The notes beneath the pieces are model-generated. The model made no database searches. It was given only the letters and a program-made list of their open reading frames with translations, and was not told the origin of the DNA. From assembly GCA_023515725.1 (NCBI GenBank), contig JALDTO010000155.1, positions 345,147 to 409,146 of the forward strand: DNA of 64,000 bases, given 5' to 3'. Source of the stretch: Amoeboaphelidium protococcarum X5. Its lineage: Eukaryota > Fungi > Aphelidiomycota. The position numbers and the translations under genes were made by a program. Below are positions 1-64,000 of this stretch, in pieces (position 1 is the first letter of the stretch; each line of letters starts with the position of its first letter).

Positions 1-842
1 ACAAGGAGCAGAGTCATATGAGTCCAGAAGAATTATAAAAACTAAAACTTGTAATGGCCCTTCTTGAGATTAGTCACAAAGAACATTATGCCAACACAAT
101 AGAACAGATAAGAGTAGAAGCGATGGTGTGTAGCTAGAGACTATAGAAATGCATCTTGTATCACGTAGTCATTAAAGAAGTTGAACGCCGTCTCTCCATA
201 CAGGTAGTAATTGGTAACCATTAGGAAATACCAATTGATAAGTCTGAACCAAGGCAACTTCTTCTCTTTAGAAGGCACCCAGGCAATAGATATAACTTCC
301 TTAAACACCAGCGTACTAACACCCACTATCAACAGAATTATAGCCATAGGACCGGAGCAGATTATCACAGCGAACGTGCTCAGCATGATCACAGTCCAAA
401 CAGTGCGCGTCCACCAGTTCTACCATCGAGTCTACTGCGGCATCTCAGTCAGTAGGGGACCATACATCTCGGTATTCTTACTACTCACACCATTCCGATT
501 ATTATTATTATTATTATGAGCCGGCAGATTGAACTTGGAGCTGGAGGAGCGGGGAATACTTTAAACAACCACTTGACCGTCTTTACCATTCGCCGTGTAG
601 CCTTATTCATCGAGATCATTATTGTTGTTGACTCGTCGCTTCAATATCTATCCATGCAACTATGACTTTTCATGAACTGAGCTGTATACCGCATCACCAT
701 CACCATCATCATAATAATCTTCTTCATCTTCAGTGGAAGTATACGGGATGAACTTCTTATCCACAGCGACCGCCTTCTTCCGCCTACTCACCGAGGGACT
801 CTTTGCTCTAAGCGGTGACTCTACTTGAGACTTCCTAGGCAT
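1..842 (-). CDS. CDS1: Phosphatidate cytidylyltransferase (CDP-DAG synthase), 5' part; runs off the window start
   Basis: ORFs 660..842 and 141..392 share one frame and join when TAG=Q; motifs RWQNWWTRT and LPWFRLINWYFL..NYYLYGE. Confidence 0.9.
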
Positions 843-1238
843 TACTTAAACTTGCTTGATACCTCAAAAAGTATAAAACAGACCAGAAAGTTGAATTTAT
901 AATCAGCGACTTTAATGAAATTCGCAAAATTAGTAAGGGCAAAGAATACTACAGTAGTTCACTCAGAGTTGTTGAATGTTGTGGAATAGCCGCGCGATAC
1001 AAAGCCACGCTTTCAATTCAATCAGCTCAGTCAACAAACTCAATAAAGACGACGCGTAAATTCAATTCAATGCGAGAGAGAACGAGAGAGAAAGCTCAAT
1101 AACACGCAGCTCTTCCTTCATTCATCCCTTTACTTTGGAACTCTCTTTTCGTAATTTAATACAGAGAATAGAATCTTTTTTTGTGGTATTTATTCTATAT
1201 AAAAGTATATTTATTCAATTATAATTAGATAAGAAGAA

Positions 1239-3449
1239 ATGACGACGATTGAGGAGCTGAATAGAGAGTTGCTACTGCTGCCTTAGTATAGACGATTTAT
1301 TGCGGAGGAGCCGTATATGAAGCCAAAGAGGAAGGAAGTTATGAAGAAGTTTATTCATAAGGTTAAATATGGCACTGATGGTAGCATTATAGAAGGTGCT
1401 GATGAGTAAGATGATGTTGAGGCGGAAGGGATTTCGAATAACCAAGATAATGCAGCGGAGTCTCATGAAAGTATTTAAATGAAGAGTGACGATAAATAGT
1501 AGACTACACTTGAGTAAAAGAAGATTAAACTATAGTCATCGTCACAGTAATAAGAAAGTCAAAACTAATAGAAATTGGATGATAATCATGCCGATGAAGA
1601 ATTAGAGGATGAGGATAATGATAGTGATGATGGCAAATTGTCAGAAGATATAAAGAAGGAGACTGTGGAATCTATAATGAAAAAGATTGAAGAGTTACAG
1701 GAGAAGAAGCATTAGTATTTTGATATGTTTAGAAAGATGTTGAAAACTACGTCTTCTGATAATGTGGCTGCTTAAGCTTCTACTGCCGCATCCGATTCTG
1801 TGATAAGATCTGATCGAGAACGGTCATAGACGCCGTCAGTGGCGCATATTCCACATTCTGGTACTCTGCCTCAATCATAGAAGCCTCTTGCTGGTGACAC
1901 TGCTACTAGTGGTGGTGGTGCTGGTGGAGATAAAGTCCAAGGTTGGGCTGGAGATTCTGTTCCATCTACTCCGAAAGTTGATAATGCTCTGGATGGTCAA
2001 GAGTCTGAGTTTGGAGATTCGAAGTAGTAGTAGTAGTAGTAGTAGTAGTAGTAGTAGTAGTAGTAATATCAGTAGTATCCTTACTAATAGTATTAACAGA
2101 AATAGTACTTGAATCGTCCTGTACTCGGATACCGAAAGCCCAATTAGTGGTATTAATAGTAGCAGTCTCAGTATTATGGTGGTTACTATCGGCCGTAGTC
2201 ATAATAGCAATAGTAGTAATAATAACAATAGAGACCTCTGTATGGAAAGCCTGGATATTTATAACGTCCTGCATATGCTGTCAGACCTCCTGCTGATTCA
2301 GCCTCTGCTGGGGGTAATCCCAATGTGTAGAATTAACAATATTCCTCGTAATAGCGTCAATAGCAATAGTATTCATAAGGTTACAAGTCACGTAGTGTAT
2401 CCAGAGATTAGAGATCTGCTTCTATAGCTCCTAGCGTTTATGGACAGGAGACTACTGATCAATAGTAGCAGACTCAACAGAGTCAATCTCAATAACCTTA
2501 GTCTTAGTAGCACTAGTAATAATTATAGTAGTAGGAGCCGCGCCCACCTGGTTATGGTAGATACGGCCAATATCTGCGTCCAAATTTCTCTAGACGTCCA
2601 CCTGCAGTTATGGGTAGTTAATATCGTCCTGGTTCATAATAGTTTTAGCCTTGGTAGTAACGAGATAAGCAGCAGAATTATCACTCTTAATAATAGTAAC
2701 AGGGAGTTCGCACGAGCGATAGTTCCACTTCTGCTTCCGCTGCTTAGAATGATAACATCGGCATGGACACTGATAGTAATCAGGCTGCAGCAGCTGATTA
2801 ATCTTTCGCTGGATAGCAAAAGCTGTAATAGTCGTAGAATCTGGGAACTACTGGCGCAAGTGGTCAGAGACCTTTTCTTTAGGCACACAATAGAGCACCC
2901 TCTCATCCTACATCTTATTAAAATTATCCATAATCTAGGCCTCCGTATCAAAGACCATCTATGCAACAGAGACCTTATTCACAGTAGTAGTAACAGTCTT
3001 AGTCTTAGTAACAATCATAGTAAAATCCATCCTATGGCTATCGTCAATAGTACTAATAACATCCCACTGCTTCTGCATATAAACAACAGTAATAGTAATC
3101 ATAGTATAATTCGCGTGCTGTTCAGAGAAGTAAGACTACTGATGGTTATTAATCGACATCTACCAACAATTCTGGTGCTGGGGGTTATTAGTAGAATCAG
3201 TATCGTCCTCCACGCCCATAAATGAATTATTAGCGTCCTTAAATGTAAGGTTATCATGGGTAGATTAGAACGGGACTTGTGTAATAATAGCCGTAGCAGT
3301 AACAGCCACCTTAGCAGTAGTAGCAATAGAATGCTAAACCGTTCATGTCCTCCAAGTAAAGATGGAGTTATGATAGTCGAGCATATGGCGCCGGTGGTGC
3401 TAATATTGCCGGCAATGATACTTAGAATAAGAGCGAGGATAAAAGTTGA
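1239..3449 (+). CDS. ~736 aa low-complexity Q/P/S/Y-rich protein with a GPS2-like coiled coil (KIEELQEKKHQYFDMFRKML)
   Basis: ATG 1239 and TGA 3447-3449 in one frame under UAR=Gln; poly-Q from TAG runs; short coiled coil resembles GPS2 LQEEKHQLFLQLKKVL. Confidence 0.65.
2025..2066 (+). repeat. (TAG)13 TAA trinucleotide tract = in-frame poly-Gln (Q14)
   Basis: Read directly; in frame with ATG 1239. Confidence 0.9.
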
Positions 3450-3597
3450 ATTTGTTTTAATATTAAGAAATTTTTGATAATAGTGTGAAGTGATATTAAG
3501 AATTTTACACTCAATTGTCCATTTACAGTAAAAATCATTCGTAACAATCAACAATAGTCATTAAGCGGCATCAATGAGCATGAATTACAATCCCGAT

Positions 3598-4199
3598 TCA
3601 AAAATCTTCCATTTGCTTCAAAGTATGGTCAAGCTCAGCCTTGGTAGCCTCGTACTGCTTCTTCACCTCTTCATACTTTTGACGCAGCAGGTGAGTCTCA
3701 CTTTCCAGCTGGGCAGCTCTGCGCTCATTAGTCTCTGCAGTCACTTCAAACTCACGAATCTGATCATTCAACTGCTTCAGTCTACTCTCCTGATTGTCAA
3801 TAGACTGCTCCAGATCCTCAATCTTCTTATTCAGAGTATCAGGATCACTAGCCAACAGAGCCTGTTACTGAGTCTGAGAAGGACGTTTGTTGCTATTGTT
3901 GTTATTACCACCGCTAAACTTGTGCAACTACTGAATTCTGCTCTCAGCTCTAGCCAAATCTCCTTCTAACAAAACAACCTTATTCTTGACTGAAGTAAAT
4001 TCATGTTCTACAATATTATTAATCGTCGTCAATTAAAATCAAATATGTTATAGGACATGATAATGAATATGCATTGAATACCTTTGTTGGCAATTTACTG
4101 CTCGGACCTTTTCAAATCCTGCTCAGCACCATCAGCTCTGACATTAGCCTCATCAGCCTCAGTGCGCAGAGTGTTCAATCTCTCTTTCAACTTTTCCAT
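3598..4199 (-). CDS. TPM1: Tropomyosin (Cdc8/Tpm-like), 2 exons (intron 4008-4081), ~175 aa
   Basis: N-terminus MEKLKERLNTLRTEADEA typical of fungal tropomyosin; heptad pattern; GT..TGTAG intron restores the frame; TGA 3598-3600. Confidence 0.85.
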
Positions 4200-62600: not shown

Positions 62601-62808
62601 AATTGTATGTAACTGTGACGATTAAAGACGCGTGCAAAAAGTAACAAGTGAAGCCACAATGTGAAGATCTCACCAAGTAAAAATCAAGATCAACGCGTGA
62701 ACAACATCATAAAAACAATCTGTGAATTCAAGGCGTCAATTAATAAGACTAATAAAAAGTAGATTATCTTTCATAAACGTGTTTATATATTTACGTTCAG
62801 TTGCGAGT

Positions 62809-63155
62809 TCAAGCCTTAACAACCTTCTTTGCAACGGTTCCTACAAATCATCATCAAGTGCAAATTATTAAGAATCCGATTATCTACACTCTGATTAACA
62901 ATATAAAATCTCACCTTCACGGAAACCATTCTTAGCACGACGTGGGATAGTCTTCAAATAACGCATTCTACCAGTACCGGTAGTCTTTCTGCGCTGTCCC
63001 TTCTCACTCCAGTTATATGATCGAATCTTTGCAGCTGGGTATCCACACTGTGCGCAAGTCTTCTTCTAATTGTGATAAGCGCGATGTCCACAACGGCGAC
63101 ACAGCGAGTGAGTCTTTGTATGTCTCTTACCAAAAGATGTAGTACCCTTCGTCAT
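62809..63155 (-). CDS. RPL37: 60S ribosomal protein L37 (eL37); intron 62841-62914
   Basis: [20 protein letters not shown](TAG=Q)[23 protein letters not shown]. Confidence 0.97.
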
Positions 63156-63338
63156 TTTATATCTACTACGTGTACAGAAATAGTGTAATTCCGAGGAAAA
63201 TACCAGCTGACTACTAATCTCTTTAGCACTGCGAACGCGAAAATTCAAAAATCAAGAATTCGTAACCGACCGAAGGCGATCGCGCCCCAAAATTCTCTCG
63301 TCCAACGCGTTTCGTCACTATTACGCTACCTCACACAG

Positions 63339-64000
63339 ATGAACCTGGATTTTATAGTAGTGAGTACCTGTGTATAACATTAATAATATCTGATATGAAT
63401 ATATTGACGCGTTCAATTGCTCAGAATTCGCGATGCTTTCCTTCTGTTAGACTATAAATGTAGTCAAGGCTTTATAATAAACAATATGATCCTTCTAAAT
63501 TGCCACTGACACACTAGCTATAAAAATCCAAAGGTGGTAAAAGTCTAGACTGGCTGCACATCAAGCCTGATCCTCCAGCTATGCCAAAGATACTGCTGCA
63601 TAATGATATCACAATTACCTCATCGAAAGACGCGAACACTTCTGCTGTATTTTGTGAAATATTCAGACCAAAGCCTCTGTATGAGCATGTTTAGTAGATT
63701 TCTGAATCTGGCTAAATGTCTACTGTGAATAAAAATTGGAACAAGATTCTTCCACCTGTCGCGTATGATCATCATGGAAAGTACAAACCTCGCGATCTCA
63801 CACCAGAAGAGTTGTAGTAGATTTTAAAGCTCAATTCGGAAGACAGGATAAAATACAGACCTTCTAGATTAGGACTCAAGTTCAAATGTAGCAAAGAACA
63901 GGTGGCAAAGATTATTCAAGCGCATCGCATGTCATTTAACAAACCTCATTCTCGGCGATGGAAATGGTATTATGGAAAGAAGTATGCCTCATTCCGCGTT
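63339..64000 (+). CDS. Mitochondrial ribosomal protein mL58/MRPL20-like, runs off the window end; start exon uncertain
   Basis: ILPP..DLTPEELQQILKLNSED...RLGLKFKCS resembles MRP-L20; putative intron 63360-63424. Confidence 0.55.

Follow-up and report, generated by a model that had tools for sequence, protein, structure and literature searches.

We analyze a stretch of 64,000 nucleotides (the window) from the genome of the aphelid Amoeboaphelidium protococcarum X5, a parasite of algae related to fungi (assembly GCA_023515725.1, contig JALDTO010000155.1, positions 345,147 to 409,146 of the forward strand), in which conserved protein-coding genes carry in-frame TAA and TAG codons (TAR for short). 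We are close to certain that the window is A. protococcarum nuclear DNA using translation table 6, such that UAR is read as Gln by dedicated tRNAs, and the release factor eRF1 would end translation at UGA only. The code itself is not new. It has been known for this species since 2013, with UAA and UAG both Gln, and parts of the literature credit it to Karpov et al. 2013, Protist 164:195 (PMC5304391, PMC6299283, PMC11687900); the code that we find in the window does not differ from it, and GenBank entries for A. protococcarum proteins already have Gln where the gene has TAG. In the mechanism that we propose, UAA and UAG would be ordinary Gln codons, decoded by tRNAs that derive from tRNA-Gln and have the anticodon UUA or CUA (each of the two encoded once in either subgenome, alongside the ordinary tRNA-Gln UUG and CUG), and termination, at UGA only, would fall to an eRF1 whose stop-recognition motifs are altered (AAVNIKS for TASNIKS, and L126Q in YxCxxxF).

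The presence of in-frame TAR codons is confirmed. When TGA is taken as the sole stop, the window has 13 frames of at least 500 codons, against a mean of 0.03 expected from 30 second-order Markov simulations with the same trinucleotide make-up. Under the standard code, no frame in the window reaches 500 codons. This asymmetry is specific to TGA, because TAA is about as common in the window (2945 occurrences vs. 2997 for TGA) and yet only 2 TAA-free frames reach that length. Pfam matches of stop-free pieces support the gene identities; all protein searches used such pieces, and the joined RPL37 model was translated locally only.

A preliminary description of the window, which gave each codon by its low coordinate, had placed TAA and TAG codons exactly at conserved Gln sites of essential genes. 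All the codons that it cited are present, in frame, and inside conserved genes. On the minus strand their first bases are RPL37 63068, DNA ligase I (LIG1) 58142, 57959 and 59284, CNB1 32881, GUT2 29969, and Hsp110 25009; on the plus strand the codons are PRMT1 22793 and P5-ATPase 15955 and 18223. As a general statement, conserved Gln sites was too strong: most TAR sites of the window lie in variable regions, and one TAA (18415, in the P5-ATPase) falls in a column that is 91% Glu. The unusual ATG-TAA start of EFM4 (36572, minus strand) is as described, and the same start is found in the assembly of a second strain (GCA_023515745.1).

Which amino acid is encoded can be asked of the genome alone. 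The window has a second genomic copy (its homeolog, on contigs C25 and C298, 88-93% identity), and comparing the two over 7,947 aligned codons in 16 genes needs no outside annotation. TAA swaps with CAA 31 times (rate 0.122) and TAG with CAG 38 times (rate 0.119). The synonymous Leu controls give 0.109 for TTA/CTA and 0.108 for TTG/CTG, while all non-synonymous first-position C/T pairs stay between 0 and 0.026. By this measure TAA and TAG are each synonymous with CAA and CAG (collectively CAR), with swap rates of 0.12 vs. 0.11 for the synonymous control. At TAR codons, 105 of the 156 changes remain inside TAR/CAR; in DNA ligase I, for instance, the homeolog reads CAA where the window has TAG 57959. 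Alignments to homologs also point to Gln. The CNB1 TAG column has Gln in 119 of 119 homologs, and a conserved TAR column of the P5-ATPase has it in 114 of 114. In the P5-ATPase alignment (150 homologs, 50% clustering), Gln makes up 100% of the column at 15955, 86% at 18535, and 91% at 18697. The conserved TAR columns of this protein divide into four with Gln and one with Glu, and Gln is the top residue overall for TAA and for TAG.

The one Glu column, at 18415, is what could be invoked for UAA and UAG having different meanings (one of them Glu or Lys, for example), as in the ciliate PL0344. The homeolog comparison speaks strongly against such a split: besides its swaps with CAA, TAA exchanges with TAG 27 times, with AAA 5 times, and never with GAA, and TAG exchanges with GAG only twice. 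Moreover, the two suppressor tRNAs described below are identical at 66 of 72 positions. We regard a difference in meaning as exceedingly improbable.

TAR and CAR are one transition apart, and a C-to-T artefact could in principle produce the same picture, either by editing of genomic TAR to CAR in the mRNA or by a systematic assembly error. We give this hardly any credence. The second strain has two more syntenic copies of the region, 88-97% identical, with TAG and TAA at the same sites, which rules out sequencing error; the same sites also recur in the homeolog. There are no CGA/TGA and no CGG/TGG swaps in the homeolog comparison, so that the change affects Gln codons specifically, and cognate UUA and CUA tRNAs are present in the genome.

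As for termination, gene ends were initially placed at the first TGA, and were then tested independently against the homeolog over 60 bases on each side. Summed over 23 genes, mismatches in the 60 bases that precede TGA are distributed 24/23/51 among codon positions 1/2/3, with 2 indel positions, a coding pattern; in the 60 bases that follow TGA they are 54/65/57, with 51 indel positions, and no coding pattern. By comparison, the 60 bases that follow internal TAR codons are still coding (656/460/1345). TGA is retained in 22 of the 23 homeologs. The remaining one, EFM4, at first seemed to lack a TGA in the homeolog, a reading that we rejected, as a one-base indel moves the stop to a different TGA. 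This indel belongs to the window copy of EFM4 (35746-35790), where it alters the last residues and the stop near the 3′ end; the three remaining copies match one another. No internal TGA was found within any homeolog frame of the 16 genes compared. An apparent extension of RPL37 by some 50 codons beyond its normal end was also discarded, since a 74-nt intron leads to a TGA. The proposal that every gene ends at TGA thus holds for the 23 genes tested and for RPL37 by way of its intron. The mitochondrial contig, C346 (28 kb), provides an internal control: its open reading frames terminate at TAA or TAG. Homeolog swaps, homolog columns, and conservation at gene ends are three independent sequence tests, and they bear out the proposed assignment of UAA and UAG to Gln and of UGA to stop.

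Context-dependent codes do exist (PMC5304391), and one could imagine a code like that of Condylostoma or Blastocrithidia, with UAR as Gln inside genes and as terminator near the poly(A) tail. Our coverage of gene ends is limited to 24, first set at the first TGA. We see neither terminal use of UAR nor UAR depletion near the end. Within the final 30 codons, TAR accounts for 25 of 49 Gln codons, and elsewhere for 441 of 770 (Fisher p = 0.46), and TAR occurs 1-4 codons before TGA, even immediately before it. Conservation stops at TGA and not at the last TAR, and TGA is kept, or in one case shifted to another TGA, in the 23 homeologs compared. A context-dependent code is therefore very unlikely, if a little less so than the split and artefact explanations.

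Dedicated tRNA genes with UUA and CUA anticodons, which had been predicted to lie elsewhere in the genome, are indeed found, two of each, together with two TTG and two CTG genes for ordinary tRNA-Gln. The suppressor tRNAs match tRNA-Gln at 50-52 positions, whereas no other tRNA among the 48 genes compared exceeds 44, and they share with the tRNA-Gln genes U73 and the flanks of the anticodon loop. By this sequence resemblance they belong to the tRNA-Gln family, and they would presumably be charged with Gln by glutaminyl-tRNA synthetase. In both, U1 is mismatched with C72 and the 27:43 pair is open, leaving a 4-bp anticodon stem. The open pair also occurs outside the suppressors, in several Lys tRNAs and in Arg(UCU). 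The anticodon stem of tRNA-Trp(CCA) has the normal 5 bp. A search with a loose anticodon-loop pattern returned chance matches only. The tRNA-Gln(CTG) genes lie 0.7-6 kb from a tRNA(CTA) gene, and on both homeologs the UUA, CUA, and CUG genes are clustered within about 20 kb (C158:362956-383608 and C200:16432-31502).

An altered eRF1 had also been foreseen. Aligned to human and wheat eRF1, the A. protococcarum protein has T58A and S60V, so that AAVNIKS replaces TASNIKS, and L126Q in the YxCxxxF motif (human numbering); the NIKS and GGQ motifs are retained. The eRF1 genes themselves hold many in-frame TAG codons; one of these encodes the Gln at position 126 in one copy, where the second copy has CAG. 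We had considered L69Q as a further special change, and dropped it, as wheat eRF1 also has Gln there. Position 126 tracks variant codes, with Phe in most ciliates with UAR as Gln (PMC4482090). From these substitutions we infer that eRF1 has lost recognition of UAR and terminates at UGA only.

Three observations weigh against the overall interpretation. One is the Glu column at 18415. Another is that the GTS motif of eRF1 is unchanged. Finally, in yeast, the corresponding L123Q raises readthrough at the three stops to 4.4/5.4/3.4% vs. 2.6/2.6/2.4% (PMC4482090 Table S3); the effect is mild and acts at all three stops, so that L126Q alone does not account for UGA specificity.

The source of the window as A. 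protococcarum, which the preliminary description had deduced from the code, is borne out by protein identity and synteny. Translated by table 6, the window CNB1 has exactly the sequence of NCBI protein P0271. The C25 homeolog CNB1 is identical to A. protococcarum MIR68_000281, to which the window CNB1 piece is 99% identical. The assembly has 23,646,343 bases in 346 contigs, a GC content of about 40%, and a genome-wide duplication that includes two copies each of eRF1 and pelota, in agreement with the GC content (40.5%) and genome-wide duplication published for this species (PMC10608142); a published assembly figure of 24.7 Mb in 258 scaffolds differs from it. By the accession ranges given in PMC10057920 (X5: KAI363..., FD95: KAI365...), the window is probably from strain X5 and the other assembly, GCA_023515745.1, from strain FD95. 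An undescribed lineage with its own independent reassignment, the other branch that had been left open, is excluded by the exact identity with A. protococcarum proteins, and the synteny with GCA_023515745.1 and the genome properties also oppose it; its probability is next to nil. The C25 copy shares 95-97% identity with either copy in the other strain, and less, 88-92%, with the window copy; a window subgenome inherited from a more distant parent would be expected to give this pattern.

Several other observations concern the organism and its relatives. Contigs about 92-98% identical to the Hsp110/PRMT1 region (window 21900-26300) occur in a freshwater metatranscriptome and in several further samples, pointing to additional strains or cryptic relatives in the wild. 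The other strain has, in one of its copies (L078:14859-20537), a truncated RAD17 with a KDZ transposase gene after it; the window copy of RAD17 is intact. An identical 27-base match is found at over a dozen genomic sites (C13:3477, C57:327419, C98:971035, and C146:612148, among others) and probably belongs to a repeated element. The mitochondrial contig has 28,427 bases at 22.6% GC, with cox, cob, and nad open reading frames and intron-like ones; ARAGORN finds only four tRNAs in it (Trp-CCA, Gln, Asn, and Tyr), which suggests tRNA import.

The coordinates of genes and tRNAs are collected in the table. Two other genes of the window are named by synteny with the gene calls of the other strain: a Het-C family gene at 36699-38210 on the minus strand, and a PLA2G12-like phospholipase gene at about 34844-35712 on the plus strand.

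Table. Genes of the window, and the tRNA and eRF1 genes discussed in the text
Feature	Position	Strand	Observations
Gln-rich open reading frame	915..3449	+	126 TAR and 52 CAR; stays open in homeolog
P5-type ATPase	14929..19179	+	single long open reading frame; 37 in-frame TAR after ATG; two TAG immediately before TGA; Pfam
PRMT1/HMT1	21965..22969	+	in-frame TAG 22793; TGA stop; Pfam
Hsp110/SSE1	23831..26134	-	in-frame TAR, e.g. TAG 25009-25007; TGA stop; Pfam
GUT2 glycerol-3-phosphate dehydrogenase	28488..30674	-	adjacent TAA-TAG 29969-29964; TGA stop; Pfam
Calcineurin B (CNB1), 178 aa	32753..33289	-	TAG is codon 137 (32881-32879)
EFM4-like methyltransferase	35746..36572	-	ATG-TAA start; introns; TGA end
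Gln-rich open reading frame, TAF4 judging by the syntenic gene annotated in the other strain	41499..44081	+	128 TAR and 69 CAR mixed in poly-Gln tracts
DNA ligase I	57102..59326	-	first exon short, containing a PIP-box-like motif (TAA 59284); TAG 58142, 57959; TGA stop; Pfam
RPL37, 90 aa	62809..63155	-	TAG 63068-63066; 74-nt GT-AG intron 62914-62841; TGA 62811-62809; Pfam
tRNA(CUA)	C158:362956; C200:31431		one gene per subgenome
tRNA(UUA)	C158:383536; C200:16432		one gene per subgenome
eRF1, two copies	L003:1423-2757 and L004		aligned to human/wheat eRF1

How does this system compare with other variant codes? With the other users of table 6 (ciliates, dasycladaceans, and Hexamita) it shares UAR as Gln, UGA as the sole stop, UUA and CUA tRNAs derived from tRNA-Gln, and a substituted eRF1 position 126; unlike in those groups, its origin is within Opisthokonta, and independent. 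The Stylonychia-type eRF1 carries a QFM change, which is absent from A. protococcarum eRF1, where TSM is found instead. At position 126, ciliates with UAR as Gln mostly have Phe (PMC4482090), and A. protococcarum has Gln. In-frame UAR sense codons are also a property of Blastocrithidia, Condylostoma, and Amoebophrya. In contrast to these, UGA is never internal here in the genes tested, UAR is not used terminally, and the anticodon stem of tRNA-Trp(CCA) has 5 bp. A 4-bp anticodon stem is found in the suppressor tRNAs here, and in tRNA-Trp in context-dependent codes without dedicated stops (bioRxiv 10.1101/2023.06.19.543857). Paraphelidium tribonemae, also of the Aphelidea, uses the standard code (PMC6299283), and the reassignment is thus lineage-specific within aphelids.

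We found no literature on the suppressor tRNAs or eRF1 of this species, in a search that did not cover Karpov 2013 or Mikhailov 2022 themselves. The details of the machinery (suppressor tRNAs with open 27:43 and U1.C72; eRF1 L126Q) may thus be unpublished. We consider it unlikely, though less so than any of the alternatives above, that this machinery is both undescribed and mechanistically distinct, with 27:43 open and U1.C72 in both suppressor tRNAs, and with the UGA bias of eRF1 obtained by L126Q plus an eroded TASNIKS instead of the L126F of ciliates.

In practice, annotation of the A. protococcarum genome must use table 6, and genes called "broken" on account of TAA or TAG need to be read again. 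Among close fungal relatives, this is the one reported nuclear code with UAR as Gln, and yeast is the closest tractable host for any table-6 organism. Should these features of the tRNAs and of eRF1 be required for out-competing an eRF1 that is still partly omnipotent, they would offer an opisthokont route to stop-codon loss that can be tested in yeast.

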